Below, in pieces: positions 3,124 through 27,872 of a DNA stretch of 64,000 nucleotides. How positions within the stretch are numbered: the first letter of the stretch is position 1; every line of letters starts with the position of its first letter. Location of the stretch: assembly GCA_965655095.1 (NCBI GenBank), contig OZ296655.1, positions 35,340,001 through 35,404,000 on the forward strand, written 5' to 3'. The notes beneath the pieces were generated by a model. That model was not told the origin of the DNA. It ran no database searches and saw only the letters and a list, made by a program, of their open reading frames with translations. The position numbers were made by a program, and so were the translations under genes. Source of the stretch: Haplodiscus bocki (Eukaryota).

Positions 3124-3913
3124 GCCTATTCGTTGCTATAAACTTAATAAAGTTCCGGCGATGATGTCTACAATGAAAGGGAAAAAACACTCAAAAGCAG
3201 AAGCAATGTGCTTCGAACAGAAGTCAACAAATGCAACAAAAGGATCTGTCCGTGGTTGACGGGGATTCAGCTGTGTTGTGAAATGTGCTCAAGGTACATC
3301 CACGGAGTTTGTCTAGGCGTGGACGAAGCTGTGACCAACATGCTGGTAAATCTTCTCGGATGTTTCTGGTAAGGTCATGTTTGGAGAGATTAGAATAAAG
3401 AACTGTAATTCCACTATAAGCTCAAAAGCTCAGTGAAATTGTCACTCATTTGAAATTCCTTGTTACTTTGATACCTCCACAAAAAAACCTATTATTGATA
3501 AAATTATAATTAGAAAAATACATTATTTATTACAGATATATATCTCTAATCTATTTCTCAACCTGGAGGGGGCCTATTTTGTTCTTGTTGGCAGATACTG
3601 GTAGTGGATGCATTGCTCCGTATTTCTAAAATCTTCAGTAAATCTTGTCTTCCTCAGCAATATTCTCGCTTATCGGTTCATACTCCTGTATAATTCAAAG
3701 GCGGTTGGTTTCCGTTCAATACTGTCAACGGCTTCCAATAGAGTGATTCCGGTGCCTCCCGAAACGGTTGCCCCAAATCTCAGTAGCGACATGACAAAGT
3801 TGTACAAAAATCTCAGCTCAGATCTACAGTTTAGCTTCCTCGGTCGATTGATGGCGAAGATTTCAGAGTTTGCCTTCGTGATCATGCGTCTCATATGTGG
3901 TTCTAGTTGTTGA

Positions 3914-4535
3914 ATGAGTGACGATTTTCACAAGTCATACGCAAGTATACCTGAAAACTCTACGGCCGCACCAAACATTGCAAAACTTTTGTCATTCGGA
4001 ACCTTCAATGTTCGAAGACTAACAGATAATGTGAATAAAAACTATCTCGTGGATGACGCCCAAGCCTACAACATTGATATGTTGTATTCAAGAAACAAAA
4101 ATCAGCAAACAGCAAGATATCATTGTTGAGAGTCATTATCGTGTTATTTGTATGAATCTCACTGAGGACTGTATGACAATGGTTTCCTCTTAGGAGCCAA
4201 ACAAGAAGCGAATGTCTTTCGTTTCTAGCGCGTATCAACGAATTTGTGCATTACAGTTTCACGCAGAAGAATCACATTACAGATCAGAAACGATCGATGA
4301 CACAAAGTTGAGAGTTCAAAAACCAAATGTTCTCTATTGAAGCAAATCGGACACAAAATTGACCATCAGCAAGAGACAACCTGACGAGCTTATCACAAAA
4401 GTGAAAGCATATGCATCACTTACAGGAAGTCGTACTGAGACAAGAGCAGAACTTGACGAATTTTGTACACAACTCTGCAAAACGACCGCCACATGCTCGA
4501 TAAGATTGGCTCAAATTATTATTGCTGGAAATTTA
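3914..4535 (+). pseudogene. 5' APE endonuclease fragment of an RTE-like LINE, repeated in every array A unit
   Basis: LSFGTFNVRRL...YNIDM then frameshifted CIQETKIS, followed by AYASLTG...ELDEFCTQL...IIAGN. These are APE motifs, truncated at the unit junction within the GDFNA-equivalent motif. Confidence 0.8.
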
Positions 4536-7500
4536 ACAATTGCCACAGCGCAAAAAATGCAGACAATTCAGACCAAATCGATTCAGATAAACGTAATAAA
4601 GTTTCGGTAATGGTGTCTACAATGAAAGTGAAAAGACACTCAAAAGCAGAAGCAGTGTGCTTCGAACAGAAGTCAACAAATGCAACTAAATGTTTTCTGT
4701 CCGTGGTTGACGGGGATTCAGCTGTGTTGAAATGTGCTCAAGGTACATCCACGCAGCTTGCCTAGGCGTGGACGGAAATGTGACCAACATGCTGGTAAAT
4801 CTTTTCGGATGTTTCTGGTAAAGTCATGTTTGGAGAGATTAGAATAAAGAACTGTAATTCCCACTATAAGCTCAAAAGCTCAGTGAAATTGTCACTCATT
4901 TGAAATTCCTTGTTACTTTGATACCTCCACAAAAAAACCTATTATTGATAAAATTATAATTAGAAAAATACATTATTTATTACAGATATATATCCATAAT
5001 CTAATTCTCAACCTGGAGGGGGCCTATTTTGTTCTTGTTGGCAGATACTGGTAGTGGATTCATTGCTCCGTATTTCTAAAATCTTCAGTAAAGTCTTGTC
5101 TTCCTCAGCAATATTCTCGCTTATCGGTTCATACTCCTGTATAATTCAAAGGCGGTTGGTTTCCGTTCAATACTGTCAACGGCTTCCAATAGAGTGATTC
5201 CGGTGCCTCCCGAAACGGTTGCCCCAAATCTCAGTAGCGACATGACAAAGTTGTACAAAAATCTCAGCTCAGATCTACAGTTTAGCTTCCTCAGTCGATT
5301 GATGGCAAAGATTTCAGAGTTTGCCTTCGTGATCATGCGTCTCATATGTGGTTCTAGTTGTTGAATGAGTGACGATTTTCACAAGTCATACGCAAGTATA
5401 CCTGAAAACTCTACGGCCGCACCAAACATTGCAAAACTTTTGTCATTCGGAACCTTCAATGTTCGAAGACTAACAGATAATGTGAATAAAAACTATCTCG
5501 TGGATGACGCCCAAGCCTACAACATTGATATGTTGTATTCAAGAAACAAAAATCAGCAAACAGCAAGATATCATTGTTGAGAGTCATTATCGTGTTATTT
5601 GTATGAATCTCACTGAGGACTGTATGACAATGGTTTCCTCTTAGGAGCCAAACAAGAAGCGAATGTCTTTCGTTTCTAGCGCGTATCAACGAATTTGTGC
5701 ATTACAGTTTCACGCAGAAGAATCACATTACAGATCAGAAACGATCGATGACACAAAGTTGAGAGTTCAAAAACCAAATGTTCTCTATTGAAGCAAATCG
5801 GACACAAAATTGACCATCAGCAAGAGACAACCTGACGAGCTTATCACAAAAGTGAAAGCATATGCATCACCTACAGGAAGTCGTACTGAGACAAGAGCAG
5901 AACTTGACGAATTTTGTACACAACTCTGCAAAACGACCGCTATATGCTCGATAAGATTGGCTCAATTTCTTATTGCTGGAAATTCAGCAATTGCCACCGC
6001 AAAAAATGCAGACAATTCAGACCAAATCGATTCAGATAAACGTAATAAAGTTTCGGCAATGATGTCTACAATGAAAGTGAAAAGACACTCAAAAGCAGAA
6101 GCAGTGTTCTTCGAACAGAAGTCAACAAATGCAACTAAATGTTTTCTGTCCGTGGTTGACGGGGATTCAGCTGTGTTGAAATGTGCTCAAGGTACATCCA
6201 CGCAGCTTGCCTAGGCGTGGACGGAGCTGTGACCAACATGCTGGTAAATCTTTTCGGATGTTTCTGGTGAAGCCATGTTTGGAGAGATTAGAATAAAGAA
6301 CTGTAATTCCCACTATAAGCTCAAAAGCTCAGTGAAAATGTCACTCATTTGAAATTCCTTGTTACTTTGATACCTCCACAAAAAACTTATTATTGATAAA
6401 ATTATATTTAAAAAAAAACATTATTTATTACAGATATATATCCATAATCTAATTCTCAACCTGGAGGGGGCCTATTTTGTTCTTGTTGGCAGATACTGGT
6501 AGTGGATGCATTGCTCCGTATTTCTAAATTCTTCAGTAAAGTCTTGTCTTTCTCAGCAATATTCTCGCTTATCGGTTCATACTCCTGTATAATTCAAAGG
6601 CGGTTGGTTTCCGTTCAATACTGTCAACGGCTTCCAATAGAGTGATTCCGGTGCCTCCCGAAACGGTTGCCCCAAATCTCAGTAGCGACATGACAAAGTT
6701 GTACAAAAATCTCAGCTCAGATCTACAGTTTAGCTTCCTCAGTCGATTGATGGCAAAGATTTCAGAGTTTGCCTCCGTGATCATGCGTCTCATATGTGGT
6801 TCTAGTTGTTGAATGAGTGACGATTTTCACAAGTCATACGCAAGTATACCTGAAAACTCTACGGCCGCACCAAACATTGCAAAACTTTTGTCATTCGGAA
6901 CCTTCAATAATCGAAGACTAACAGATAATGTGAATAAAAACTATCTCGTGGATGACGCCCAAGCCTACAACATTGATATGTTGTATTCAAGAAACAAAAA
7001 TCAGCAAACAGCAAGATATCATTGTTGAGAGTCATTATCGTGTTATTTGTATGAATCTCACTTAGGACTGTATGACAATGGTTTCCTCTGAGGAGCCAAA
7101 CAAGAAGCGAATCTCGTTCGTTTCTAGCGCGTATCAACGAAATTGTGCATTACAATTTCACGCAGAAGAATCACATTACAGATCAGAAACGATCGATGAC
7201 ACAAAGTTGAGAGTTCAAAAACCAAATGTTCTCTATTGAAGCAAATCGGACACAAAATTGACCATCAGCAAGAGACAACCTGACGAGCTTATCACAAAAG
7301 TGAAAGCATATGCATCACTTACAGGAAGTCGTACTGAGACAAGAGCAGAACTTGACGAATTTTGTACACAACTCTGCAAAACGACCGCCATATGCTCGAT
7401 AAGATTGGCTCAATTTCTTATTGCTGAAATTCAACAATTGCCACAGCGCAAAAAATGCAGACAATTCAGACCAAATCGATTCAGATAAACTTAATAAAGT

Positions 7501-10500
7501 TTCGGCGATGATGTCTACAATGAAAGTGAAAAGACACTCAAAAGCAGAAGCAGTGTGCTTCGAACAGAAGTCAACAAATGCAACTAAATGTTTTCTGTCC
7601 GTGGTTGACAGGGATTCAGCTGTGTTGAAATGTGCTCAAGGTACATCCACGCAGCTTGCCTAGGCGTGGACGAAGCTGTGACCAACATGCTGTTAAATTT
7701 TTTCGGATGTTTCTGGTAAAAACATGTTTGGAGAGATTAGAATAAAGAACTGTAATTCCCACTATAAGCTCAAAAGCTCAGTGAAAATGTCACTTCTTTG
7801 AAATTCCTTGTTACTTTGATACCTCCAAAAAAAACTCATTATTGATAAAAGTATATTTAAAGAAAAACATTATTTACTACAGATATATATCCATAATCTA
7901 TTTCTCAACCTGGAGGGGGCCTATTTTGTTCTTGTTGGCAGATACTGGTAGTGGATGCATTGCTCCGTATTTCTAAAATCTTCAGTAAAGTCTTGTCTTC
8001 CTCATCAATATTCTCGCTTATCGGTTCATACTCCTGTATAATTCAAAGGTGGTTGGTTTCCGTTCAATACTGTCAACGGCTTCCAATAGAGTGATTCCGG
8101 TGCCTCCCGAAACGGTTGCCCCAAATCTCAGTAGCGACATGACAAAGTTGTACAAAAATCTCAGCTCAGACCTACAGTTTAGCTTCCTCAGTCGATTGAT
8201 GGCGAAGATTTCAGAGTTTGCCTTCGTGATCATGCGTCTCATATGTGGTTCTAGTTGTTGAATGAGTGACGATTTTCACGAGTCATACGCAAGTATACCT
8301 GAAAACTCTACGGCGTCACCAAACATTGCAAAACTTTTGTCATTCAGAACCTTCAATGTTCGAAGACTAACAGATAATGTGAATAAAAACTATCCCGTGG
8401 ATGACTCCCAAGCCTACAACATTGATATGTTGTATTCAAGAAACAAAAATCAGCAAACAGCAAGATATCTTTGTTGAGAGTCATTATCGTGTTATTTGTA
8501 TGAATCTCACTTAGGACTGTATGACAATGGGTTCCTCTTAGGAGCCAAACAAGAAGCGAATGCCTTTCGTTTCTAGCGCGTATCAACGAATTTGTCTATT
8601 ACAGTTTTACGCAGAAGAATCACATTACAGATCAGAAACGCTCGATGACACAAAGTTGAGAGTTCAAAAACCAAATGTTCTCTATTGAAGCAAATCGAAC
8701 ACAAAATTGACCATCAGCAAGAGACAACCTGACGAGCTTATCACAAAAGTGAAAGCATATGCATCACTTACAGGAAGTCGTACTGAGACAAGAGCAGAAC
8801 TTGACGAAGTTTCTACACAACTCTGCAAAACGACCGCCACATGCTCGATAAGATTGGCTCAATTTATTATTGCTGGAAATTTAACAATTGCCAAAGCGCA
8901 AAAAATGCAGAAAATTCAGTCCAAATCGTCAAAACTCAATTAGTTTGCACTAGGAATTCGAGACCTGGAGCGAAAATTAAACATTTGCACTTATATTGTT
9001 TGAAAAATTAATGATTTTAATTACCAGCAAAATTAATTTCATAAGACAGGAAATGTTCTGACCTTTTGGCTGTTTGGCCTCTATCGAGTAGCTCTTTCCT
9101 TGGACGACTGAAGTCAATCTAAGAAATCTGTATTGTACATTTCTGATCCCGGTTTGTTTTAATTGCAGCAATTATTTCTGATAATTACAACCAAACGAAA
9201 TTTATAAAAACTCGTTAATTATATCATTGATAGTAAGTCCAAACAACTGGTCCAAAAATGTTTCAAAAGATTGAAGGTGAATTTTGCATTGCGCCGAAAA
9301 TTTAAAGCACCTAAGAACTACATTTCTCGATGATTAAATAAAAACAATTCGGGCTTCGGAGTAGTCTGGAATTCTTCGGCACTTTGAAAAGCAATTTTTC
9401 AGCGCAATGAATACCCACTAAGAGTGAAAAGTCAAAGAAAGCTAATGCACGGCTCCGAGTCCAACGATCAAAGATTGGAGCCCGAGCGTCCTTTACATGT
9501 TCGTCAATGATGTAAAAGACTTCCGTATTCACTTTCGGAGAAAACACAAGGAACAGCATCTAAAAAAATATCTAGAAGTCAATCGCGGACAATTGTTTAG
9601 TCCAAAGCAAAGGAATAGCATCAAAAACCGTGAATAAAATTTCAAATTCAGAAAGAGCTAAAAAAACTCAATCGAAAAAATATAATGATCAAATGATTAA
9701 AAAATTGAGCATCATGAAATTATAATTAAAGCAACCACTAAGTTTGTAGTCAACTTCAGACGCGAGGCTCGGAAATCGGATCTGTACTGTAATGCCTGGC
9801 ACGCTACGCCATTCAGGAATAGGTTCCAATTCTTTCAGTTCTACCAGGGGTTGCTACATATAGGGTAGTGGGTCATAACAATCAGTGCTCAAAAAAAAAG
9901 AAAATTGAGCGCCCGGCCTATTCGTTGCGATAAACTTATTAAAGTTCCGGCGATGATGTCTACATGGAAAGTGAAAAGACACTCAAAAGCAGAAGCAGTG
10001 TGTTTCGAACAGAAGTCAACAAATGCAACTAAATGTTTTCTGTCCGTGGTTGACGGGGATTCAGCTGTGTTGTGAAATGTGCTCAAGGTACATCCACGGA
10101 GTTTGTCTAGGCGTGGACGAAGCTGTGATTAACATGCTGGTAAATCTTCTCGGATGTTTCTGGTAAAGTCATGTTTGGAGAGATTAGAATAAAGAACTGT
10201 AATTCCCACTATAAGCTCAAAAGCTCAGTGAAATTGTCACTCATTTGAAATTCCTTGTTACTTTGATACCTCCACAAAAAAATTATTATTGATAAAATTA
10301 TAATTTAAAAAAATTACATTATTTATTACAGATATATATCCCTAATCTATTTCTCAACCTGGAGGGGGCCTATTTTGTTCTTGTTGGCAGATACTGGTAG
10401 TGGATGCATTGCTCCGTATTTATAAAATCTTTAGTAAATTCTTGTCTTCCTCAGCAATGTTCTCGCTTATCGTTTCATACTCCTGTATAAGTCAAAGGCG

Positions 10501-13500
10501 GTTGCTTTCCGTTCAATACTGTCAACGGCTTCCAATAGAGTGATTCCGGTGCCTCCCGAAACGGTTGCCCCAAATCTCAGTAGCGACATGACAAAGTTGT
10601 ACAAAAATCTCAGCTCAGACCTACAGTTTAGCTTCCTCAGTCGATTGATGGCGAAGATTTCAGAGTTTGCCTTCGTGATCATGCGTCTCATATGTGGTTC
10701 TAGTTGTTGAATGAGTGACGATTTTCACGAGTCATACGCAAGTATACCTGAAAACTCTACGGCGTCACCAAACATTGCAAAACTTTTGTCATTCAGAACC
10801 TTCAATGTTCGAAGACTAACAGATAATGTGAATAAAAACTATCCCGTGGATGACTCCCAAGCCTACAACATTGATATGTTGTATTCAAGAAACAAAAATC
10901 AGCAAACAGCAAGATATCTTTGTTGAGAGTCATTATCGTGTTATTTGTATGAATCTCACTTAGGACTGTATGACAATGGGTTCCTCTTAGGAGCCAAACA
11001 AGAAGCAGATTTCTTTCGTTTCTAGCGCGTATCAACGAATTTGTGTATTACAGTTTCACGCAGAAGAATCACATTACAGATCAGAAACGATCGATGACAC
11101 AAAGTTGAGAGTACAAAAACCAAATGTTCTCTATTGAAGCAAATCGGACACAAAATTGACCATCAGCAAGAGACAACCTGACGAGCTTATCACAAACGTG
11201 AAAGCATATGCATCACTTACAGGAAGTCGTACTGAGACAAGAGCAGAACTTGACGAATTTTCTACACAACTCTGCAAAACGACCGCCACATGCTCGATAA
11301 GATTGGATCAATTTATTATTGCTGGAAATTTAACAATTGCCAAAGCGCAAAAAATGCAGACAATTCAGTCCAAATCGTCAAAACTCAATTAGTTTGCAGT
11401 AGGAATTCGAGACCTGGAGCGAAAATTAAACATTTGCACTCATATTGTTTGAAAAAAAGTAATGATTTTAATTGCCAGCAAAATTAATTTCATAAGACAG
11501 GAAATGTTCTGACCTGGTGGCTGTTTAGCCTCTATCGAGTAGCTCTTTCCTTGGACGACTGTAGTCAATCTAAGAAATCTGTATTGTACATTTCTGATCC
11601 CGGTTTGTTTTAATTGCAGCAATTATTTCTGATAATTACAACCAAACGAAATTTATAAAAACTCGTTAATTATATCATTGATAGTAAGTCCAAACAACTG
11701 GTCCAAAAATGTTTCAAAAGATTGAAGGTGAATTTTGCATTGCGCCGAAAATTTAAAGCACCTAAGAACTACATTTCTCGATGATTAAATAAAAACAATT
11801 CGGGCTTCGGAGTAGTCTGGAATTCTTCGGAACTTTGAAAAGCAATTTTTCAGCGCAATGAATACCCACTAAGAGTGAAAAGTCAAAGAAAGCTAAAGCA
11901 CGGTTCCGAGTCCAACGATCAAAGATTGGAGCCCGAGCGTCCTTTACATGCTCGTCAATGATGTAAAAGACTTCCGTGTTCACTTTCGGAGAAAACACAA
12001 GGAACAGCATCTAAGAAAAAATATCTAAAAGTCAATCGCGGACAATTGTTTAGTCCCAAGCAATGGAATAGCATCGAATACCGTAAATAAAATTTCAAAT
12101 CCAGAAAGAGATATGAAAACTCATTCGAAAAAATATAATGATCAAATGATTAAAATTTTGAGCATCATGAAATTATAATTAAAGCAACCACGAAGTTTGT
12201 AGTCAACTTCAGACGCGAGGCTCGGAAATCGGATCTGTACTGTAATGCCTGGCACGCTACGCCATTCAGGAATAGGTTCCAATTCTTTCAGTTCTACCAG
12301 GGGTTGCTACATATAGGGTAGTGGGTCATAACAATCAGTGCTCAAAAAAAGAAAATTGAGCGCCCGGCCTATTCGTTGCTATAAACTTAATAAAGTTCCG
12401 GCGATGATGTCTACAATGAAAGGGAAAAAACACTCAAAAGCAGAAGCAATGTGCTTCGAACAGAAGTCAACAAATGCAACAAAAGGATCTGTCCGTGGTT
12501 GACGGGGATTCAGCTGTGTTGTGAAATGTGCTCAAGGTACATCCATGGAGTTTGTCTAGGCGTGGACGAAGCTGTGACCAACATGCTGGTAAATCTTCTC
12601 GGATGTTTCTGGTAAGGTCATGTTTGGAGAGATTAGAATAAAGAACTGTAATTCCCACTATAAGCTCAAAAGCTCAGTGAAATTGTCACTCATTTGAAAT
12701 TCCTTGTTACTTTGATACCTCCACAGAAAACCTATTATTGAGAAAATTATAATTTAAAAAAATACATTATTTATTACAGATATATATCCATAATCTATTT
12801 CTCAACCTGGAGGGGGCCTATTCTGTTCTTGTTGGCAGATACTGGTAGTGGATGCATTGCTCCGTATTTCTAAAATCTTTAGTAAATTCTTGTCTTCCTC
12901 AGCAATGTTCTCGCTTATCGTTTCATACTCCTGTATAAGTCAAAGGCGGTTGCTTTCCGTTCAATACTGTCAACGGCTTCCAATAGAGTGATTCCGGTGC
13001 CTCCCGAAACGGTTGCCCCAAATCTCAGTAGCGACATGACAAAGTTGTACAAAAATCTCAGCTCAGACCTACAGTTTAGCTTCCTCAGTCGATTGATGGC
13101 GAAGATTTCAGAGTTTGCCTTCGTGATCATGCGTCTCATATGTGGTTCTAGTTGTTGAATGAGTGACGATTTTCACGAGTCATACGCAAGTATACCTGAA
13201 AACTCTACGGCGTCACCAAACATTGCAAAACTTTTGTCATTCAGAACCTTCAATGTTCGAAGACTAACAGATAATGTGAATAAAAACTATCCCGTGGATG
13301 ACTCCCAAGCCTACAACATTGATATGTTGTATTCAAGAAACAAAAATCAGCAAACAGCAAGATATCTTTGTTGAGAGTCATTATCGTGTTATTTGTATGA
13401 ATCTCACTTAGGACTGTATGACAATGGGTTCCTCTTAGGAGCCAAACAAGAAGCAGATTTCTTTCGTTTCTAGCGCGTATCAACGAATTTGTGTATTACA

Positions 13501-16500
13501 GTTTCACGCAGAAGAATCACATTACAGATCAGAAACGATCGATGACACAAAGTTGAGAGTACAAAAACCAAATGTTCTCTATTGAAGCAAATCGGACACA
13601 AAATTGACCATCAGCAAGAGACAACCTGACGAGCTTATCACAAACGTGAAAGCATATGCATCACTTACAGGAAGTCGTACTGAGACAAGAGCAGAACTTG
13701 ACGAATTTTCTACACAACTCTGCAAAACGACCGCCACATGCTCGATAAGATTGGATCAATTTATTATTGCTGGAAATTTAACAATTGCCAAAGCGCAAAA
13801 AATGCAGACAATTCAGTCCAAATCGTCAAAACTCAATTAGTTTGCAGTAGGAATTCGAGACCTGGAGCGAAAATTAAACATTTGCACTCATATTGTTTGA
13901 AAAAAAGTAATGATTTTAATTGCCAGCAAAATTAATTTCATAAGACAGGAAATGTTCTGACCTGGTGGCTGTTTAGCCTCTATCGAGTAGCTCTTTCCTT
14001 GGACGACTGTAGTCAATCTAAGAAATCTGTATTGTACATTTCTGATCCCGGTTTGTTTTAATTGCAGCAATTATTTCTGATAATTACAACCAAACGAAAT
14101 TTATAAAAACTCGTTAATTATATCATTGATAGTAAGTCCAAACAACTGGTCCAAAAATGTTTCAAAAGATTGAAGGTGAATTTTGCATTGCGCCGAAAAT
14201 TTAAAGCACCTAAGAACTACATTTCTCGATGATTAAATAAAAACAATTCGGGCTTCGGAGTAGTCTGGAATTCTTCGGAACTTTGAAAAGCAATTTTTCA
14301 GCGCAATGAATACCCACTAAGAGTGAAAAGTCAAAGAAAGCTAAAGCACGGTTCCGAGTCCAACGATCAAAGATTGGAGCCCGAGCGTCCTTTACATGCT
14401 CGTCAATGATGTAAAAGACTTCCGTGTTCACTTTCGGAGAAAACACAAGGAACAGCATCTAAGAAAAAATATCTAAAAGTCAATCGCGGACAATTGTTTA
14501 GTCCCAAGCAATGGAATAGCATCGAATACCGTAAATAAAATTTCAAATCCAGAAAGAGATATGAAAACTCATTCGAAAAAATATAATGATCAAATGATTA
14601 AAATTTTGAGCATCATGAAATTATAATTAAAGCAACCACGAAGTTTGTAGTCAACTTCAGACGCGAGGCTCGGAAATCGGATCTGTACTGTAATGCCTGG
14701 CACGCTACGCCATTCAGGAATAGGTTCCAATTCTTTCAGTTCTACCAGGGGTTGCTACATATAGGGTAGTGGGTCATAACAATCAGTGCTCAAAAAAAGA
14801 AAATTGAGCGCCCGGCCTATTCGTTGCTATAAACTTAATAAAGTTCCGGCGATGATGTCTACAATGAAAGGGAAAAAACACTCAAAAGCAGAAGCAATGT
14901 GCTTCGAACAGAAGTCAACAAATGCAACAAAAGGATCTGTCCGTGGTTGACGGGGATTCAGCTGTGTTGTGAAATGTGCTCAAGGTACATCCATGGAGTT
15001 TGTCTAGGCGTGGACGAAGCTGTGACCAACATGCTGGTAAATCTTCTCGGATGTTTCTGGTAAGGTCATGTTTGGAGAGATTAGAATAAAGAACTGTAAT
15101 TCCCACTATAAGCTCAAAAGCTCAGTGAAATTGTCACTCATTTGAAATTCCTTGTTACTTTGATACCTCCACAGAAAACCTATTATTGAGAAAATTATAA
15201 TTTAAAAAAATACATTATTTATTACAGATATATATCCATAATCTATTTCTCAACCTGGAGGGGGCCTATTCTGTTCTTGTTGGCAGATACTGGTAGTGGA
15301 TGCATTGCTCCGTATTTCTAAAATCTTCAGTAAAGTCTTGTCTTCCTCATCAATATTCTCGCTTATCGGTTCATACTCCTGTATAATTCAAAGGTGGTTG
15401 GTTTCCGTTCAATACTGTCAACGGCTTCCAATAGCGTCATTCCGGTGCCTCCCGAAACGGTTGCCCCAAATCTCAGTAGCGGCATGACAAAGTTGTACAA
15501 AAATCTCAGCTCAGATCTACAGTTTAGCTTCCATAGTCGATTGATGGCAAAGATTTCAGAGTTTGCCTCCGTGATCATGCGTCTCATATGTGGTTCTAGT
15601 TGTTGAATGAGTGACGATTTTCACAAGTCATACGCAAGTATACCTGAAAACTCTACGGCCGCACCAAACATTGCAAAACTTTTGTCATTCGGAACCTTCA
15701 ATAATCGAAGACTAACAGATAATGTGAATAAAAACTATCTCGTGGATGACGCCCAAGCCTACAACATTGATATGTTGTATTCAAGAAACAAAAATCAGCA
15801 AACAGCAAGATATCATTGTTGAGAGTCATTATCGTGTTATTTGTATGAATCTCATTTAGGACTGTATGACAATGGTTTCCTCTTAGGAGCCAAACAAGAA
15901 GCGAATGCCTTTCGTTTCTAGCGCGTATCAACGAATTTGTGTACTACAGTTTCAGGCAGAAGAATTACATTACAGATCAGAAACGATCGATGACACAAAG
16001 TTGAGAGTTCAAAAACCAAATGTTCTCTATTGAAGCAAATCGGACACAAAATTGACCATCAGCAAGAGACAACCTGACGAGCTTATCACAAAAGTGAAAG
16101 CATATGCATCACTTACAGGAAGTCGTACTGAGACAAGAGCAGAACTTGACGAATTTTGTACACAACTCTGCAAAACGACCGCCACATGCTCGATAAGATT
16201 GGCTCAATTTCTTATTGCTGGAAATTTAACAATTGCCAAAGCGCAAAAATGCAGACAATTCAGACCAAATCGATTCAGATAAACTTAATAAAGTTTCGGC
16301 GATGATGTCTACAATGAAAGTGAAACACTCAAAAGCATAAGCAGTCTGCTTCGAACAGAAGTCAACAAATGCAATTAAAAGTTGTCTGTCCGTGGTTGAC
16401 GGGGATGCAGCTGTGTTGAAATGTGCTCAAGGTACATCCACGCAGCTTGCCTAGGCGTGGACGAAGCTGTGACCAACATGCTGGTAAATCTTTTCGGATG

Positions 16501-19500
16501 TTTCTGGTAATGTCATGTTTGGAAAGATTAGAATAAAGAACTGTAATTCCCACTATAGGCTCAGTGAAAATGTCACTCATTTGAAATTCCTTGTTACTTT
16601 GATACCTCCACAGAAAACCTATTATTGAGAAAATTATAATTTAAAAAAATACATTATTTATTACAGATATATATCCATAATCTATTTCTCAACCTGGAGA
16701 GGGCCTATTCTGTTCTTGTTGGCAGATACTGGTAGTGGAAGCATTGCTCCGTATTTCTAAAATCTTCAGTAAAGTCTTGTCTTCCTCATCAATATTCTCG
16801 CTTATCGGTTCATACTCCTGTATAATTCAAAGGTGGTTGGTTTCCGTTCAATACTGTCAACGGCTTCCAATAGCGTGATTCCGGTGCCTCCCGAAACGGT
16901 TGCCCCAAATCTCAGTAGCGGCATGACAAAGTTGTACAAAAATCTCAGCTCAGATCTACAGTTTAGCTTCCATAGTCGATTGATGGCAAAGATTTCAGAG
17001 TTTGCCTCCGTGATCATGCGTCTCATATGTGGTTCTAGTTGTTGAATGAGTGACGATTTTCACAAGTCATACGCAAGTATACCTGAAAACTCTACGGCCG
17101 CACCAAACATTGCAAAACTTTTGTCATTCGGAACCTTCAATAAGCGAAGACTAACAGATAATGTGAATAAAAACTATCTCGTGGATGACGCCCAAGCCTA
17201 CAACATTGATATGTTGTATTCAAGAAACAAAAATCAGCAAACAGCAAGATATCATTGTTGAGAGTATTATCGTGTTATTTGTATGAATCTCATTTAGGAC
17301 TGTATGACAATGGTTTCCTCTTAGGAGCCAAACAAGAAGCGAATGCCTTTCGTTTCTAGCGCGTATCAACGATTTTGTGTACTACAGTTTCAGGCAGAAG
17401 AATCACATTACAGATCAGAAACGATCGATGACACAAAGTTGAGAGTTCAAAAACCAAATGTTCTCTATTGAAGGAAATCGGACACAAAATTGACCATCAG
17501 CAAGAGACAACCTGACGAGCTTATCACAAAAGTGAAAGCATATGCATCACTTACAGGAAGTCGTACTGAGACAAGAGCAGAACTTGACGAATTTTGTACA
17601 CAACTCTGCAAAACGACCGCCACATGCTCGATAAGATTGGCTCAATTTCTTATTGCTGGAAATTTAACAATTGCCAAAGCGCAAAAATGCAGACAATTCA
17701 GACCAAATCGATTCAGATAAACTTAATAAAGTTTCGGCGATGATGTCTACAATGAAAGTGAAACACTCAAAAGCATAAGCAGTGTGCTTCGAACAGAAGT
17801 CAACAAATGCAATTAAAAGTTGTCTGTCCGTTGTTGACGGGGATGCAGCTGTGTTGAAATGTGCTCAAGGTACAACCACGCAGCTTGCCTAGGCGTGGAC
17901 GAAGCTGTGACCAACATGCTGGTAAATCTTTTCGGATGTTTCTGGTAATGTCATGTTTGGAGAGATTAGAATAAAGAACTGTAATTCCCACTATAGGCTC
18001 AGTGAAAATGTCACTCATTTGAAATTCCTTGTTACTTTGATACCTCCACAGAAAACCTAGTATTGAGAAAATTATAATTAAAAAAATACATTATTTATTA
18101 CAGATATATATCCATAATCTATTTCTCAACCTGGAGGGGGCCTATTCTGTTCTTGTTGGCAGATACTGGTAGTGGAAGCATTGCTCCGTATTTCTAAAAT
18201 CTTCAGTAAAGTCTTGTCTTCCTCATCAATATTCTCGCTTATCGGTTCATACTCCTGTATAATTCAAAGGCGGTTGGTTTCCGTTCAATACTGTCAACGG
18301 CTTCCAATAGAGTGATTCCGGTGCCTCCCGAAACGGTTGCCCCAAATCTCAGTAGCGGCATGACAAAGTTGTACAAAAATCTCAGCTCAGATCTACAGTT
18401 TAGCTTCCGCAGTCGATTGATGGCAAAGATTTCAGAGTTTGCCTTCGTGATCATGCGTCTCATATGTGGTTCTAGTTGTTGAATGAGTGACGATTTTCAC
18501 AAGTCATACGCAAGTATACCTGAAAACTCTACGGCCGCACCAAACATTGCAAAACTTTTGTCATTCGGAACCTTCAATGTTCGAAGACTAACAGATAATG
18601 TGAATAAAAACTATCTCGTGGATGACGCCCAAGCCTACAACATTGATATGTTGTATTCAAGAAACAAAAATCAGCAAACAGCAAGATATCATTGTTGAGA
18701 GTATTATCGTGTTATTTGTATGAATCTCATTTAGGACTGTATGACAATGGTTTCCTCTTAGGAGCCAAACAAGAAGCGAATGCCTTTCGTTTCTAGCGCG
18801 TATCAACGAATTTGTGTATTACAGTTTCAGGCAAAAGAATCACATTACAGATCAGAAACGATCGAAGACACAAAGTTGAGAGTTCAAAAACCAAATGTTC
18901 TCTATTGAAGGAAATCGGACACAAAATTGACCATCCGCAAGAGACAACCTGACGAGCTTATCACAAAAGTGAAAGCATATGCATCACTTACAGGAAGTCG
19001 TACTGAGACAAGAGCAGAACTTGACGAATTTTGTACACAACTCTGCAAAACGACCGCCACATGCTCGATAAGATTGGATCAATTTATTATTGCTGGAAAT
19101 TTAACAATTGCCAAAGCGCAAAAAATGCAGACAATTCAGTCCAAATCGTCAAAACTCAATTAGTTTGCACTAGGAATTCGAGACCTGGAGCGAAAATTAA
19201 ACATTTGCACTCATATTGTTTGAAAAAAAGTAATGATTTTAATTGCCAGCAAAATTAATTTCATAAGACAGGAAATGTTCTGACCTGGTGGCTGTTTAGC
19301 CTCTATCGAGTAGCTCTTTCCTTGGACGACTGTAGTCAATCTAAGAAATCTGTATTGTACATTTCTGATCCCGGTTTGTTTTAATTGCAGCAATTATTTC
19401 TGATAATTACAACCAAACGAAATTTATAAAAACTCGTTAATTATATCATTGATAGTAAGTCCAAACAACTGGTCCAAAAATGTTTCAAAAGATTGAAGGT

Positions 19501-20139
19501 GAATTTTGCATTGCGCCGAAAATTTAAAGCACCTAAGAACTACATTTCTCGATGATTAAATAAAAACAATTCGGGCTTCGGAGTAGTCTGGAATTCTTCG
19601 GCACTTTGAAAAGCAATTTTTCGGCGCAATCAATACCCACTAAGAGTGAAAAGTCAAAGAAAGCTAAAGCACGGCTCCGAGTCCAACGATCAAAGATTGG
19701 AGCCCGAGCGTCCTTTACATGTTCGTCAATGATGTAAAAGACTTCCGTATTCACTTTCGGAGAAAACACAAGGAACAGCATCTAAAAAAAAATATCTAGA
19801 AGTCAATCGCGGACAATTGTTTAGTCCCAAGCAATGGAATAGCATCAAATACCGTAAATAAAATTTCAAATTCAGAAAGAGATATGAAAACTCAATCGAA
19901 AAAATATAATGATCAACAGATTAAAATTTTGAGCATCATGAAATTATAATTAAAGCAACCACTAAGTTTGTAGTCAACCTCAGACGCGAAGCTCGGAAAT
20001 CGGATCTGTACTGTAATGCCTGGCACGCTAGGCCATTCAGGAATAGGTTCGAATTCTTCCAGCTCTACCAGGCGTTGCTACATATAGGGTAGTGCGTCAT
20101 ATAAATCAGTGCTCAAAAAAATATAAAATTGAGCGCCCG

Positions 20140-20168
20140 GCCTATTCGTTGCGATAAACTTATTAAAG
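20140..20168 (+). other. Degenerate leader relic before the PHD ORF (further copies 3124-3152, 9916-9944, 12367-12395, 14815-14843; 3' half retained in short units)
   Basis: GCCTATTCGTTGCGATAAACTTATTAAAG differs from the reconstructed 31-mer by 3 substitutions and a 2-nt gap. The ATG follows after a short 7-8 nt spacer. Confidence 0.6.
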
Positions 20169-20410: not shown

Positions 20411-20672
20411 GAATAAAGAACTGTAATTCCCACTATCAGCTCAAAAGCTCAGTGAAATTGTCACTCATTTGAAATTCCTTCTTACTTTGATACCTCCAAA
20501 AAAACTTATTATTGATAAAATTATAATTTCAAAAAAATACATTATTTATTACAGGTATATATCCATAATCTATTGCTCAACCTGGAGGGGGCCTATTCTG
20601 TTCTTGTTGGCAGATACTGGTAGTGGATGCATTGCTCCGTATTTCTAAATACTTCAGTAAAGTCTTGTCTTC

Positions 20673-20678
20673 CTCAGC
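20673..20678 (+). other. Left copy of putative target-site duplication CTCAGC (right copy 27867-27872)
   Basis: Uninterrupted units read TCTTCCTCAGCAATATTCTC. The left junction is TCTTCCTCAGC|CTAATT and the right junction is GTCT|CTCAGCAATATTCTC. Confidence 0.7.
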
Positions 20679-20718
20679 CTAATTGTTGCCTTTTTGTTGT
20701 GATAAACTTATTAAATAG
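20677..20718 (+). other. Candidate spliced-leader-derived sequence at the 5' end of the LINE insertion
   Basis: Reads GCCTAATTGTT + GCCTTTTTGTTGTGATAAACTTATTAAATAG. It is homologous to the motif before the PHD ORF in array A, although flanking sequences are unrelated, and it ends in AG. The spliced-leader identity is inferred. Confidence 0.6.
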
Positions 20719-21059
20719 TTTGAGATATTAGGTGTGAGCTGACCGTGGAGTCACTGGAGTGGATGTGGACATCACTTCTCGGCTAATCAATTACAATAGA
20801 TATCGGTAGAGAGCAGAGCTACCGATATCGCGGAGTATCCAAGCGCATATACGCCAGTCATCACCTTGGATCCGACGATATCCATCTCAGCGAGCAAGGT
20901 CTAGTGGGTCTCCGCAGCATCCTCAAAAACAACATTCTCTACGAGAACTACAGCACGGACATCCACAACGCCGGCCACATCCAACGCCGAGTGCTCGTCA
21001 ACAAGTGCAAGTGCGGCCTCTACTCAGCCTAAACCAGGTTAGAATTTCCCCAGCTTCCA

Positions 21060-21472
21060 CAGGCACCCTCCGAGGTCCTCTGAAGCTGCCTCTTTCCTTG
21101 TATCTAGTGTTCCTTGCTTACCTCGCTCCAGGTACCTCACGAGTTTCCGAGATTTTTCCCTTCTCAGCCAAACCAAACATCATTTTATCCTACCGTCTCC
21201 GCCAACAATTTTCTCCTGGGCACCTTCCGGGCTCCTCCTGAGAAATCTCTTCCACTTTCTCCTGGGCACCCTCCGGGGTCCTCCTAAGGAATCTCTTCTG
21301 CTTTCTCCTGGGCACCCTCCGGGGTCTTCCTGAGTACTCTCTTCCGCTAACTCTTTGCCACCCTCTTCGCCAAAAAATTTCTCCTGGGCACCCTCCGGGG
21401 TCCTTCTGAGAATTCTCTTCTGTTATCTATCGGGAACATCTCGTGGGCACCCCCCGGGGTCTTCCTAAGAGC
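21060..21472 (+). repeat. GC-rich ~46-bp monomer repeats in the LINE-a 5' UTR
   Basis: TTCTCCTGGGCACCCTCCGGGGTCCTCCTGAG-like copies start at 21211, 21257 and 21303 (period 46), 21379 and ~21438, with a degenerate copy at ~21060. Confidence 0.9.
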
Positions 21473-21567
21473 ATAAGATCCCCGCCTCACAATGACATCT
21501 AGAACTTGTCTCCCCTCAGACAAGAACTATTATCAACTATTATCATACCATCGCAGAGCTTCTCACA

Positions 21568-22353
21568 GTGGAGCCAGTAGAACTGAGCAGCTTCACCGGC
21601 AGGTCCAACAAAGCTACATTAGAATGCCTCCTCAGAGAGGCTCTATCCCAGCTTGCCGATGCCAAAGCGCAAAACAACGGACTCGTCCAAAGACTTGCCT
21701 CCAACGAAAGCAAGTTCGAGGAAATCAAAGAAGTGGTCATAAACAAATTAGAATCAGCAATGCCAGTTCAAGCCTCAGGTCCCTCTGCGCAATACCAAGC
21801 TCAAAAAGAGCCTGCTTTACCCCAGCAAAAAGCGGTCTCTCAAAGCATTCTGTGCCAAATAAGAATCGATGGATTTCCCGAGGCCACCACATCCTCTCCG
21901 GAGAACCCAGATAACACTACCAGCATCGTCAACCAGGAATCAGCGAAAGTCAAAGAGGTTCTCGACTTCTTAGATGAAAGACCAACCATTGTCGATGCGC
22001 GACGCCTCGGAAAATTCAAACCATCATTCAAAGAGAAACGCACCCGGCCCCGGTCAACCTTGCTAACCGTGGCAAACGTCTGGGAGGCAAAACAAATCCT
22101 GGTGAAAGCTTCACTACTCCGAGGCTTCACCAAATCTAAAGCCTTCCTCTCCCCCAGTCTCTCTCAAGAAGACATCATCAAAGAACGCAAAGTCCTCAAA
22201 AAGCGTCGAGAGCTGATAAACTCAGGCGTTCAGGCCAAATCGCTTAAAATCAAAAACTTTCAACTGTTTCTAGACAACGTCCTGGTCGATGACCTTACAT
22301 GCGAAGACGAGAAGAGGCCTCCTTATGGAGGCAGTGCTGCTTCCTCTGCCTAA
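21568..22353 (+). CDS. LINE-a ORF1 (coiled coil plus RRM/CTD-like nucleic-acid chaperone)
   Basis: Motifs QIRIDGFPE, IVDARRLGKF..RPRSTLLTV and FLSPSLSQEDIIKERKVLKKRRELINSG..LKIKNFQLFLDN. The frame is open from 21496; the likely ATG at 21492 is one base out of frame. Confidence 0.85.
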   Translation: MEPVELSSFTGRSNKATLECLLREALSQLADAKAQNNGLVQRLASNESKFEEIKEVVINKLESAMPVQASGPSAQYQAQKEPALPQQKAVSQSILCQIRIDGFPEATTSSPENPDNTTSIVNQESAKVKEVLDFLDERPTIVDARRLGKFKPSFKEKRTRPRSTLLTVANVWEAKQILVKASLLRGFTKSKAFLSPSLSQEDIIKERKVLKKRRELINSGVQAKSLKIKNFQLFLDNVLVDDLTCEDEKRPPYGGSAASSA

Positions 22354-25175
22354 CTATACCAGTCACTTTCTATTCTCTCTTACAACGTTCGAAGCCTCAT
22401 ATCTCAGCAAAGAAGAACCTGCATTGCAAACTTCATCACAGCCAACCCCTTCGACATCCTATGCCTCTGCGAAACCTGGCTTGACAGCAGTTTCAGAGAC
22501 ACTGAACTCTTCCTCCCCAAGTACAACTGCCTACGTTCTGAAGGAGATGCATCCCAGCACGGTGGGGTGCTCACGGTTGTCAGAAGCTCTATCAGCCATG
22601 AAATAATCCCGCTCTCTCTACCCGCTGGCTGCTGCTGTGTTGCCACCACTATCCAATCAAACAAGCCTTTTGTAATTGTTAACGCTTACAACCCACCATC
22701 AGGCAGCAACTACAGATGGCAACTATCCATTTTCGAGTCCATTCTGTGCCAAGTAAAATCATCAACCTCCAAACTTCAAGTTATTCTAACAGGAGACCTC
22801 AACCTGTCAGGGATAAACTGGGAGGACAACTCGACAAACTCGGACTACGAACTAAAATGCATTGACTTCTTCATGGAGCACAATCTGCATCAACTGAATC
22901 ATTCCATCACGACCGCTTCCAAAACTCTGGATCTCTGCCTCACAGATAACTCCGATCTAGTCATATCCTCTCTAGCGATGGACGACGCATATCTAAACAA
23001 CTCGCCACTCTCAGACTACCACCCTGTCTCCATCAAACTAAATGTCAGTGCCTTAGCACCCTTCAAAGGGTTTCCAAGTCCTTCAATTTCAACAAAATTG
23101 ATCACGACGGGCTCAACAGGGCTGCTCTCGATTCCCAATTCCGGCCGTACTGCTGGACAAACCCCGCGCTTCTCCTAGCCCTCTGGCATGAATGGCTCAA
23201 ACCTCTGCTTAACAAGTTCTTACCTCTGAAATCTGTGCATCGCTCTCGACTACCACCCTGGATCTCGCCAGAGACTTCTTACCTGATGAAGAAACTCATC
23301 ACGCTCGAAAGCAATCCAAAACTCAACACATCGTACCAAACCAAACTGCTCTCACTCAAAGAAAGAGTATATTCCAGCGCCGATGATGACCTGTGTACTT
23401 ACCAGGCACGTCTTTCCGAGAGCCGAAACTCCAAACACATCTTCAAACATTTGAAGAATCTTAAGAAGGGGGCCCACCTCCCTCCCGTTCTCAAAAACGG
23501 TGCCGACTCTGCACATAGCACTCTCGAGAAAGCCCACTTGCTAAATCAATACTTTCATTCAGTATTCAATACCAAATCCTCCGAGCCAGCCTTACCTCCT
23601 GAAGCATTCGACTATCACCCCGACAGTTCATTCGACACCTCAGTCAGCAAAGTCACCTTGATCCTATCAAATCTCGACACTCCGAAAGCCACGGGGGCTG
23701 ACGGCTTACCGCCACGCCTTCTCAAAACCTGCTGAACCGGCATAGCAAAAACCCTATTCAATATTTTCACCAAATCCAAACAAATGGGCAAATTCCCTTC
23801 CCAGAGGAAAATTGCACGCATCAAACCTCTGTTTAAAAACGGAGCAAAAGACTCAGTCTCCAATTACAGGCCAGTTGCCCTACTTCCCTGCGCAAGCAAA
23901 GTCTTGGAAAAATGTATCTACACCAAAGTCTGGGAAATCATCTCCCCTACCCGCTCTGAAGCCCAATATGGATTCAGAAAAGGGCGCTCCTGTATAATCC
24001 AACTACTAGCCTCGCTCAACATTATCTTCAACAGCAAAGATCAGAAGTTAACAACCCACGCGCTCTATCTTGACCTCCGCAAAGCTTTCGACAAAGTCGA
24101 CCACTCAATTCTGCTAAGGAAACTTTATGCAAAGGGAATTCGAGGAAAACTTCTTCTACTCATCCAGGACTACCTAACAAACAGAAAACAGCACGTCGAC
24201 GTCGATGGTAGTGTGTCCGGTAATCTAGATGTAACCAGCGGAGTCCCACAGTGGGCTCTTCTTACAGTACTCTTCTTTCTGGTTTACATCGACGATCTGC
24301 CCGAACTGATCAAGTTAGTCCACGCGACTATATTCATGTTAGTCGACGATGGGAAATTAAAAGCGTCAAACTCACAACTCTTCAATGCCCTCCCAGTCCT
24401 CTTAAAGTGGGCCTCGACCAACAAAATGTGCTTCCACCCCTCCAAAAGTAAAGTAATCTGCTTCCACGGTCCTCCTCCAGAGTACACGTTCTGCAATGTG
24501 AAACTCGAAGTCGTAGACTCCCACCGCGACCTGGGACTCCTCGTCAACAGCAGTCTCACCTGGTCCGATCATATCTCACTCCGCCTAGGAAAAGCTTATG
24601 GAGCTTTCTACCTTCTGAAACGAAATGTCTCTCCCAACCTCAGCACCTCCTCTAAGCTAAATCTCTACAAAAGCACAGTCCTATCTGTTCTCTGCTTTGC
24701 ATCTTCCTGTTGGTTCCCCTCTCGCTGGGACATGAAGAAAACTGTGCAACTCCAGAAAAGAGTAACAAACTGGATCATCCCATCTATCAAGGATTACAAA
24801 GACCGCCTCATAAAGCTCGACTTACTCCCAGTCCCTCTATACCTACAAATGCTTGATATCCTCCTAATTTTAAACATCTGCCACGGACAGTATGACTTCA
24901 ACCTCGAAGGTTTTCTATCCCTCGAACAAGGACCTAGAAGAGAAGATCGCATCATCCCAGTCGTCCAAACTACCAAATTTGAAAATGCTCAACAAGAATT
25001 CTTCACAAGAACCTGCCGCCTCATCAGATTCCTCCCCTGTTTGGATATCACCAAAACATTTGGGTTGAAACCCAAAATTCTCCGCAACTTCTGGAACTTC
25101 TTTGAAACAAAGTATAATCAAAACAACCTGCGCACCTGGCGAATAGCTTGCAGATGCCCTCAATGCACTGCATAA
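22354..25175 (+). pseudogene. LINE-a ORF2 (APE endonuclease plus reverse transcriptase), with one frameshift and one nonsense codon
   Basis: Endonuclease motifs: SYNVRSL, LCETWL, YNPPSG, GDLNL, TLDL, SDYHP. Frameshift at ~23060-23075 and in-frame TGA at 23733-23735. RT motifs: NYRPVALL, QYGFRKGRS, DLRKAFDKVDH, SGVPQW, LVDD, DLG. C-terminus NFWNFF..RTWRIACRCPQC. Confidence 0.95.
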
Positions 25176-25182
25176 ACTGCCC

Positions 25183-25244
25183 GGGAGAAATCCCTACAAC
25201 TTTCTGTTGTAAATCCGATAATTATTATTAATATTATTATTATT
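25183..25244 (+). other. LINE-a 3' terminus: twin stem-loops plus (ATT)n tail
   Basis: GGGA-GAAA-TCCC (25183-25194) is followed directly by TACAAC-TTTCT-GTTGTA (25195-25211), then ATAATTATTATTAATATTATTATTATT. Confidence 0.8.
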
Positions 25245-25271
25245 GCCCTTTTCAATATACATTGTCGGAAT

Positions 25272-26055
25272 ATGGCGGCAGCTGGCTCACGTATCCGCGT
25301 AAACTCTACATCTTCGGCAAAGGATTACAAAAACAATTGCGGCATATGTAATAAAAAGGTGAACAATGGTATTGCCTGTGACAAGTGCAATGTCTGGTTT
25401 CATGGTCCCTTTGTCAACCTAACCTCAGACCAACTATCAGTCCTGGAATCACTCAAGACCACCTGTTGGTACTGTGACTCTTGTTACGAAACACGAGCGG
25501 AATCCTTCGAGCTCAAGGAAAAAATCTGCTCCATACAGGAATCTCTCAACGATTTTAAAAACACAATGCATAAAAGCAAAGATCCCAAAATTGACATTCG
25601 AAAAGAAAGTTTATCTCCAACCGATAATCATCGATACCTAAAAAAAATAGTGGGTGTACCTGAAAACAACCTGAGATTTTCAAGTGATCGGAAACTTCGC
25701 GACAAAGAAATTATAGAGGATATTGCTACTGAACTAAAACTTCATAACGTACAAGTCTCTGACTGCCACCGTAATGGTAAGTTTAATAATTCGAAACGCC
25801 GGCCTATCATTGCCTTTTTTTCATCCATTTTGGGACGCTAGGCGAAAGGTCAGCAAAAGCATTGAAAGAAAGCTATTCCAAGAAAAAGGTATTTTTGTCC
25901 TAGCCCAGTTCTCACAAAGCGACCAAGAAATTGAAAGATGCCTTCTTGCCAGGAGATATACCCTTATCAATGATGGAACCGATAAATCACGTATCAAGAT
26001 TCGTAACCTCAATCTCTACATTGATGGCAAAGAAATTGCGCATAACGACAATTGA
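25272..26055 (+). pseudogene. LINE-b ORF1 (PHD finger plus RRM/CTD-like region), frameshifted near 25820
   Basis: CGICNKKVNNGIACDKCNVWFHGPF...WYCDSC, then IVGVPE and DCHRNGKF..RRPII. The second frame carries FSQSDQEIERCLLARRYTLINDG..IKIRNLNLYIDG, paralleling the LINE-a ORF1 C-terminus. Confidence 0.88.
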
Positions 26056-27801
26056 CTAGTACAACCACTCAAAATTGATATTTTACTATACAATGTGCGC
26101 AGCTTGTGTTCCTTTGAAAAACAAGTTAAACTTGCTAATCGACTAGCACTTCTTGATGCCGATGCTGCCTGTCTCACTGAAACCTGGCCTAACTCTTCAA
26201 TCGGCGACTCCAATATTTTTTCAAGTAGTTATTCGACCTCGGCTAGGGTTGACAGAGCGACAGGTGAACATGGGGGATGCCTTATCCTTACCAAGAAAAC
26301 TAGATAAACTGACCAGATTGATTCCACTGTAGATTTTGGTTGCGCCACGAAATTACACACCTGCTGCCAGGACCTGTTGTTTATCTGCATCTATAACCCC
26401 CCTTTCTCCAGTAAATTCCTCAGCGCGGCTATCGATATCATCAATTTTCTCACACATGTGATTAACCAGAACAGCAACCTACCCACTGTTATTTGTGGCG
26501 ACTTCAACATGCCCGATGTAATTTGGGATACATACCATAGCCATTCATCAGACTCAGTTCAAATATTAAACTTTCTCATCAATCATGGGTTTGAACAATT
26601 AGTTACACTGCCAACGCATATTAATGGTAACACTCTTGATCTAATATTTGTCAACTTCTCTACTTGCCATATTTCTGAAGTTGGCACTGGCATTACTGAT
26701 TTTTCTGATCATTTTCTGATCAGTTTTCAGTGCTATTTTGACAATAAAAAGACACATCTGTCCAATTGCAACCACAAAGTCCACATCCCACCAGAATGTT
26801 ATTCTTATCTTCAACCGGAAATTGCCTCGTCGCTTTTCTCTGTTCTTTCTCCCATTACCAGTGAAAACTATACTAATGATTGGCTTGAAAACTTTGCTCA
26901 GCTTCTATCATTGTGTTACCGAAAGAAGCGCCAAAAACGTCAAAATGCCCCTTTCTATTAGTCTTCCCACACCATGCACCTGCTAAATGTCCTCAACACT
27001 GCCAAACGACGCTGTGAGAATTATCCCTTGGCCTTAAACTTGAGGAAAATGAGCGCGATTGCTGCTCGCGACGTCAACATTTTTTTATCGAACTTGACAC
27101 CGCCGTTATCGCTAAATATCGAAAATACTGCTATCCCTGCTTCCAATACTGTCAAAGACCTAGGTCTTACTATCAGCTCTAACCTGTCCTGGTCAAGCCA
27201 TATCGAATTCAAAGTTAAATCTGCGTATTCAATCTTCTACAACCTCAAGAGATCAAAACCGCCCAACAACCACTGGCACACGAAGATCACTTTGTTTAAA
27301 TCCTACATTCTTTCTACAGTTTTATACGCCTCTGAAATTTGGTGCCCAAGTAAGACAAATTTGACTCGTCTAGAACTTTTACAATCTCGTGTGTTGAAAT
27401 GGGCCTTCCCTGGATCCAACAATAAAGAACGCTTATCGAAAGCTAAAATGCTGCCCATATTGTTGGAAATACAGCTCCGACCGCTTATTCTCTTGAACAG
27501 ACTACTAAATGGATTTTACAGCAATTTTCCTTTTTTATCACATATCTCTTTCACGATCCAAAATTCTGGTGCATACAACACCCGGTTATCTGAAAAGCCT
27601 ATGTTCCATCAGCCGAAAGTCAAGAAGACACGAACGACTCACGATTTCTTCTACCTAGTGCCAAAACTTGTGAACTACTTCCATGCAAACACGAATCTGG
27701 ACATATTCAAAAACCCCGCTAGTTTCAAATATACTGCTGCGGCCGAGTTCAACAAATTATTTTTGTTAAAAATCTGTAACCTCGATCGGCTGTACATGTA
27801 A
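26056..27801 (+). pseudogene. LINE-b ORF2: APE endonuclease fused to the RT C-terminus, RT catalytic core absent
   Basis: Endonuclease motifs YNVRSL, LTETW, EHGG, IYNPP, GDFNMP, GNTLDL, SDH, with stops at 26305 and 26959. RQNAPFY (26938) is only ~220 nt from DLG (27157), versus ~1290 nt between the equivalent points in LINE-a. Confidence 0.88.
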
Positions 27802-27872
27802 TTTTCGACTTCCCATATACGTGGCTTTCATAGCAATTCAAGTCTTTCTCTCTCAAGTCTGTGTCTCTCAGC

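Follow-up and report, generated by a model that had tools for sequence, protein, structure and literature searches.

The window analyzed here is a stretch of 64,000 nucleotides from Haplodiscus bocki, and most of it is made up of two large tandem arrays, array A and array B, both of which derive from LINE retrotransposons. Array A is interrupted by an insertion at 20677 to 27854, which begins with a partial and then a complete copy of a 31-nucleotide motif identified below as a spliced leader (SL). The features of the window are as follows.

1 to 20676 and 27855 to about 31500: array A, with units of 1.45 and 2.45 kb that hold a decayed leader, a PHD ORF1, and the start of an endonuclease (EN).
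9917 to 9945 (+): decayed DNA-encoded leader at the head of an array-A unit, 8 nt before the ATG of a decayed PHD-type LINE ORF1.
20139 to 20167 (+): second copy of the same decayed leader, in the last array-A unit.
20660 to 20676 (+): left copy of the target-site duplication (array-A sequence AAGTCTTGTCTTCCTCA); its final A may instead be the first base of the leader.
20677 to 20687 (+): partial leader, SL letters 1 to 11 (GCCTAATTGTT).
20688 to 20718 (+): complete DNA-encoded leader of 31 nt (GCCTTTTTGTTGTGATAAACTTATTAAATAG), with A5T and A6T relative to the SL gene, ending in ATAG.
20719 to 20797 (+): first part of the 5' UTR of a LINE named X.
20798 to 20807 (+): 10-nt filler at the 5' junction of a nested element.
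20808 to 25243 (+): nested LINE named Y, 5'-truncated by about 463 nt, with ORF1b at about 21568 to 22353, an APE endonuclease at 22567 to 23178, a reverse transcriptase (RT) at 23784 to 25175, and an (ATT)n-like tail at 25220 to 25243.
25244 to 25841 (+): LINE X resumes, with the rest of the 5' UTR and an ORF1 with a PHD finger (25272 to 25841).
26377 to 27801 (+): remnant of LINE X ORF2, namely, an APE endonuclease (26377 to 26961) followed by the post-RT C-terminal part (26974 to 27801); the RT core is deleted.
27802 to 27854 (+): 3' end of LINE X without a clear microsatellite tail; 27840 to 27854 resembles the target.
27855 to 27871 (+): right copy of the target-site duplication, where array A resumes.
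31498 to 64000: array B, with units of about 1.5 kb that hold, on the minus strand, a fragment similar to the ORF2 C-terminus.

We first examined whether the motif was real. A 15-mer core occurred 11 times in the window against 0.32 expected, and ten of these hits lie at the same point of the array-A repeat units. The best-kept array-A version, the 29-mer GCCTATTCGTTGCGATAAACTTATTAAAG, is present at 9917 to 9945 and 20139 to 20167, whereas eight more decayed versions lie in the other units. In the whole genome, the last 21 letters of the motif, with one mismatch allowed, occurred 1687 times, whereas the reversed control occurred 0 times. The motif at 20677 directly abuts the left copy of a 16 to 17 bp target duplication, which is imperfect on the right and occurs only once in uninterrupted array-A units. 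The observation made in an earlier note, that this motif heads the insertion and recurs just before the ATG of an array-A ORF, was therefore confirmed, but two of its details required correction. The note took the insertion for one element, although it consists of two, and it described the array-A ORF as unrelated, although this ORF is a decayed LINE ORF1 that matched the ORF1 of the most frequent leader-capped family (F1, see below) in a tblastn search (E 1.5e-5) and gave a weak PHD hit. Array A thus derives from an old leader-capped LINE. We also considered whether the array-A variant represents a second class of SL, but this was rejected because the exact variant occurs nowhere else in the genome.

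To determine the identity of the motif, we searched the full text of the literature for the 31-mer GCCTAATTGTTGTGATAAACTTATTAAATAG and found it in one work only, the genome paper of the acoel Symsagittifera roscoffensis. It is identical, letter for letter, to the leader of that species, which was reconstructed from unmapped transcript 5' ends and assigned to 10,433 genes (30.2% of the total). In addition, a cluster member of one related LINE protein is a RefSeq protein of S. roscoffensis. The earlier note had proposed as a test that a genomic SL RNA gene should exist, and we found that the leader followed by GTAAGTATTCC, which supplies a GTAAGT donor, occurs about 694 times in this genome, nearly all in one tandem array on contig 9. 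Each unit also holds a 5S rRNA gene (117.8 bits), about 210 nt after the exon. The units are 1.7 to 3.6 kb long and, from 72.47 Mb onward, vary in steps of 168 bp (1732, 1900, 2068, ... 3581), which implies an internal 168-bp satellite in the spacer. The transcript is predicted to fold (−27.3 kcal/mol, z −3.1) into a stem pairing the 3' half of the leader with the intron and a 10-bp 3' hairpin; the single-stranded AUUUGA between them is only Sm-like, and no SL family in Rfam matched, the 5S rRNA being the only hit. A minor isoform, T25A, forms two small arrays of 12 genes in total on the minus strand of contig 9 (72.140–72.146 and 72.195–72.205 Mb; intron GTAAGT[A/C]TTCC), about 270 kb from the main array, whereas the published work reports one predominant leader. 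These results indicate that the motif is the organism's own SL, on the basis of its genes here and its published assignment to mRNAs in S. roscoffensis. Both the identification in the note and its tentative likening of the motif to an acoel leader hold.

Next, we examined the leader copies outside the SL RNA genes. Subtracting the genes left about 990 copies, from which we read 30 random hits and 17 hits that happen to be followed by GT, corresponding to 36 independent loci (numbered with the prefix L, as are loci fetched from other assemblies); this sample was selected for a near-perfect 21-mer. The upstream DNA was unrelated in every case, similarity started at GCC or at an A before it, and the downstream sequences diverged right after ATAG. 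The downstream parts fell into at least 15 groups with no nucleotide similarity to one another. At least 25 loci have a PHD ORF1 and/or an APE endonuclease, and 6 more have LINE-like Cys-rich or esterase-like ORFs; the general order is a Cys-rich ORF1 and then an ORF2 that opens with the APE endonuclease. The PHD finger was at or above the Pfam cut-off in eight queries from seven sequence groups and weaker in two more. By contrast, one tandemly repeated locus (L039–L046; contig 7, 57.90–57.99 Mb; period about 9.5 kb) has units that each start with the leader followed by a SUMO-like ORF (Rad60-SLD, E 3.6e-10), which is a retroposed host gene that was later amplified and the only host retrocopy seen in the sample. 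Other leader-capped LINEs also sit in tandem arrays, on contig 2 at 1.79 Mb and at 147.4 Mb.

For the most frequent family, F1, we obtained three full copies (L061–L063) from a public ENA assembly. Their mutual similarity starts exactly at AGCCTAATTG, runs 3.77 kb through a PHD ORF1 and an ORF2 with both EN and RT, and ends in a (TAG)n tail. No SL intron follows the 3' ends, and a fourth copy (L064), in an NCBI assembly, has a leader truncated by 6 nt. The DNA leader of L061 carries the change T29C. The target duplications of the F1 copies are too short or ambiguous (3–5 nt, overlapping the (TAG)n tail) to fix the first base. ORF1 proteins with a PHD finger and/or an esterase are features of CR1 and L2 LINEs (PMC4120745, PMC3905857), and PHD ORF1s are typical of these lineages (PMC4120745). 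We therefore refer to the elements as CR1/L2-like, a name that rests on domain architecture and on the microsatellite tails, (TAG)n and (ATT)n, alone.

A genome search with the insertion in the window showed that it is composite. At least 14 other loci join 20688–20797 directly to about 25244–27107, where their similarity ends, and the loose end at 20797 reads TGCCCACTTCAATATAC..., matching the window from 25244 onward. This defines LINE X, composed of the leader, 5' UTR, PHD ORF1, and APE endonuclease; in the window copy, the ORF that follows aligns to the post-RT C-terminus of other ORF2s, showing that the RT core is deleted. The stretch 20808–25243 is the different LINE Y, which carries EN and RT but has no leader in this copy. 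Sixteen other Y copies continue upstream with the same 30-mer, and three public full copies run 463 nt further and begin with the last 11 letters of the leader or with scrambled repeats of its 3' part. In L066 (1810–1850) and L067 (1740–1790), the start consists of stuttered repeats of the 3' part of the leader (ACTTATTAAA.., repeated 2–3 times) before ACTTTTTCATG, suggesting slippage of the reverse transcriptase where the start of the UTR resembles the leader. Y is thus also a leader-capped family, but the insertion in the window is capped through X and not through the RT-bearing element. A full Y copy (L065) has EN and RT in ORF2, as do L061–L063, and its first ORF (5130–5744) has a GDSL/SGNH esterase-like motif (GGNDLF; Pfam Lipase_GDSL_2, E 1.6e-4, below the cut-off), although esterase ORF1s were found only in vertebrate CR1/L2 groups (PMC4120745). 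Loci L068–L070 from other ENA assemblies carry the same leader remnant, so they are from the same or a sister species and provide no independent comparison between species.

The upstream flanks bear on the possibility that these are site-specific LINEs that insert into SL genes, in which case the leader would be target DNA. Such elements (SLACS, CZAR, CRE, NeSL-1) exist in nematodes and trypanosomatids. The related target-specific lineages are reviewed in PMC4640811. However, the upstream flanks are all different and are not SL gene sequence, the copy in the window sits in array A with its own target duplication, the endonuclease is of the APE type and not restriction-like, and no SL intron follows the 3' ends. 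This explanation is contradicted by the flanks and can be practically dismissed.

A second possibility is that the reverse transcriptase switches template from the 5' end of the LINE RNA onto SL RNA, giving chimeras like those of U6 and L1 (10.1101/2025.02.02.635956). The partial-plus-full leader at 20677–20718 and a similar form in L033–L036 do look like template jumps, and we read them as template jumps or slippage (11 nt in the window) at the physical 5' end of the RNA, which is inference. As the main mechanism, however, template switching is very unlikely because the junction is always at the last base of the exon, never includes the intron part of the SL RNA, and lies at a fixed point in each family rather than at random truncation points. 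It is also conceivable that master LINE copies sit inside the SL RNA gene array and that the SL exon is spliced in cis to a LINE acceptor. The array is large, with units of variable length in which insertions could hide, but this would require a separate master for each of at least 15 families, no LINE was seen in the 13 array units read, and 30% of genes are trans-spliced in the host. We consider this reading very unlikely as well.

We then examined whether the leader is added in trans at each cycle or inherited in cis, and six lines of DNA evidence favor addition in trans. In addition to the constant exon-end junction, the leader is identical to the host SL over all 31 letters in families whose UTRs and ORFs are otherwise unalignable. 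L004, L011, and L038 share an ORF1 with 90–92% identity from the start codon, but their 5' UTRs (11, about 109, and 186 nt, respectively) are unrelated, and each is capped by the SL. Leader-spacer-leader forms occur in L001, L005/6, and L031/32/47, as expected if a copy was transcribed from upstream, spliced at an upstream site, and retroposed again; L025 is a nested insertion instead. SL isoforms also cut across families. T25A, which is a living minor SL gene, caps 6 dispersed copies with 6 different UTRs, including families that normally carry the major SL. T24A (…CTTAATAAATAG) has 49 copies, against 1–7 for other changes at these two sites apart from T25C at 23; it sits on at least 12 different UTRs, is enriched in older F1 copies, and is present in 8 of 10 array-A units (window 3137–17730). 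No SL gene with T24A was found in the genome, and it may be an extinct SL allele recorded by old insertions. In 82 F1 junctions tallied by hand, private changes were equally common in the SL and UTR halves (16 versus 13), whereas shared changes were fewer in the SL half (12 versus 37 without T24A, p = 0.008; with T24A included, p = 0.07). Some SL-half variants are shared by 2–3 F1 copies, so the refreshment is not absolute, or these mutations recur. In 35 leader-capped loci (L001–L063), the base before GCC was A in 28, as in the SL gene (p = 2e-9), suggesting that the mature leader may be 32 nt (AGCC...), one base longer at the 5' end than published and copied to its first base, although in some F1 copies the A could belong to the target.

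The alternative is that an ancestral LINE captured the leader once and has since inherited it in cis as part of the 5' UTR, for example, as an internal promoter or translation element. In its favor, the leader is DNA-encoded in every copy, a few SL-half variants are shared within F1, and three unrelated families have a UTR complementary to the leader, as if it were a fixed structural part. In these families (L061, 7932–8010; L019, 1491–1570; L029, 1452–1531 (minus strand)), the 5' UTR begins with an anti-leader stretch (CTGTTTAATAAGT-like) that is predicted to pair with SL letters of about 18–31 in a 12–16 bp hairpin (z −4.1 to −5.0); the loops differ, one being a UUCG tetraloop, and the hairpin is absent in L010 and in X of the window. 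By contrast, the identity of the leader across unalignable families, the unrelated UTRs on one ORF1 family, the spread of isoforms, one of which matches a minor SL gene, and the leader on the SUMO-like retrocopy all argue against single capture, and we consider it unlikely.

Taken together, the evidence supports the interpretation in the earlier note that the motif is the SL of this organism and that LINEs are trans-spliced and copied up to the cap, with far more than two families involved. We hold with good confidence that transcripts of CR1/L2-like LINEs (PHD or esterase-like ORF1, APE and RT ORF2) receive the SL by ordinary trans-splicing and that target-primed reverse transcription then copies the mRNA to its very 5' end, so that each full-length new copy would start with the leader directly against the target duplication. 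The identity of the SL and its genes, the position of the leader at the exact 5' boundary of many families, the junction at the exon end, and the target duplication in the window are established by the analysis, whereas trans-splicing of the LINE RNA, renewal of the leader in trans at each cycle, and the creation of partial double leaders by occasional template jumps are inferred from DNA patterns. A search for RNA data found only four runs of one study with no library record, and their contigs carry long, diverse sequence upstream of the leader and so behave like DNA; moreover, because the leader is DNA-encoded, SL-LINE reads alone would not prove trans-splicing. More speculatively, the integrated leader carries its own 3' splice site (...TTATTAAATAG), and its AG might serve again as the acceptor. 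In this view, a whole guild of LINEs would live off the SL machinery of the host, since any read-through transcript could be trans-spliced there and gain a fresh capped leader without a promoter of its own, and the anti-leader stretch of some families might recruit the SL RNP or mark the RNA for the element's own proteins. This remains a tentative possibility, and in the three families with the hairpin, the AG lies inside it, which may argue against its reuse there or may point to another role.

Retroposed leaders are classic in dinoflagellates, where stacked leaders are evidence of repeated rounds of trans-splicing and retroposition (Slamovits and Keeling 2008, as cited in PMC12582326; PMC12014239; PMC5585692). 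The carriers there are host genes, whereas here they are almost all autonomous LINE families of an animal, with complete leaders against target duplications. In parasitic flatworms, 597 SL-like loci attached to LTR/LINE elements were discarded, with the remark that they may be integrated trans-spliced retrotransposons (PMC12582326), and six such TE models were noted in Schistosoma mansoni (PMC5832876). Those loci held only partial leaders and were discarded or suspected to be assembly artefacts, without analysis of boundaries, families, target duplications, or isoforms, and the acoel belongs to a different phylum with an unrelated SL. In Hydra, about 30% of TE Iso-Seq reads carry an SL (PMC12220107), but this is at the RNA level only, and no leader fixed at the DNA 5' ends of elements appears to have been reported. 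HDV-like ribozymes at the 5' end of L1Tc/R2-type LINEs (PMC3185411, PMC4035085) are a functional analogue, being a device that frees the RNA from co-transcripts so that no promoter of its own is needed; however, they act by self-cleavage and leave an uncapped end, whereas here a capped leader would be supplied by the host. SL-gene-specific LINEs and U6/L1 chimeras also link LINEs with SL or snRNA sequences, but they arise by targeted insertion or template switching, both of which are contradicted here by the flanks, the endonuclease type, and the fixed exon-end junction. The S. roscoffensis genome paper does not mention the phenomenon, and further literature searches found no description of it. 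The present elements are the first analyzed case in which many animal LINE families carry the complete host leader at their DNA 5' ends.

For annotation, about 1000 DNA-encoded leaders can be mistaken for SL genes or for trans-splice sites. The copies also serve as dated fossils of the SL itself, as in the T24A isoform, for which no living gene was found, and in the possible 32-nt leader that starts with A. LINEs must rebuild a usable 5' end after every jump, and the known solutions are internal promoters and 5' ribozymes. A host-supplied trans-spliced cap would be a third solution, and it would explain how many families with freely swapped 5' UTRs stay active in a genome where 30% of genes are trans-spliced.
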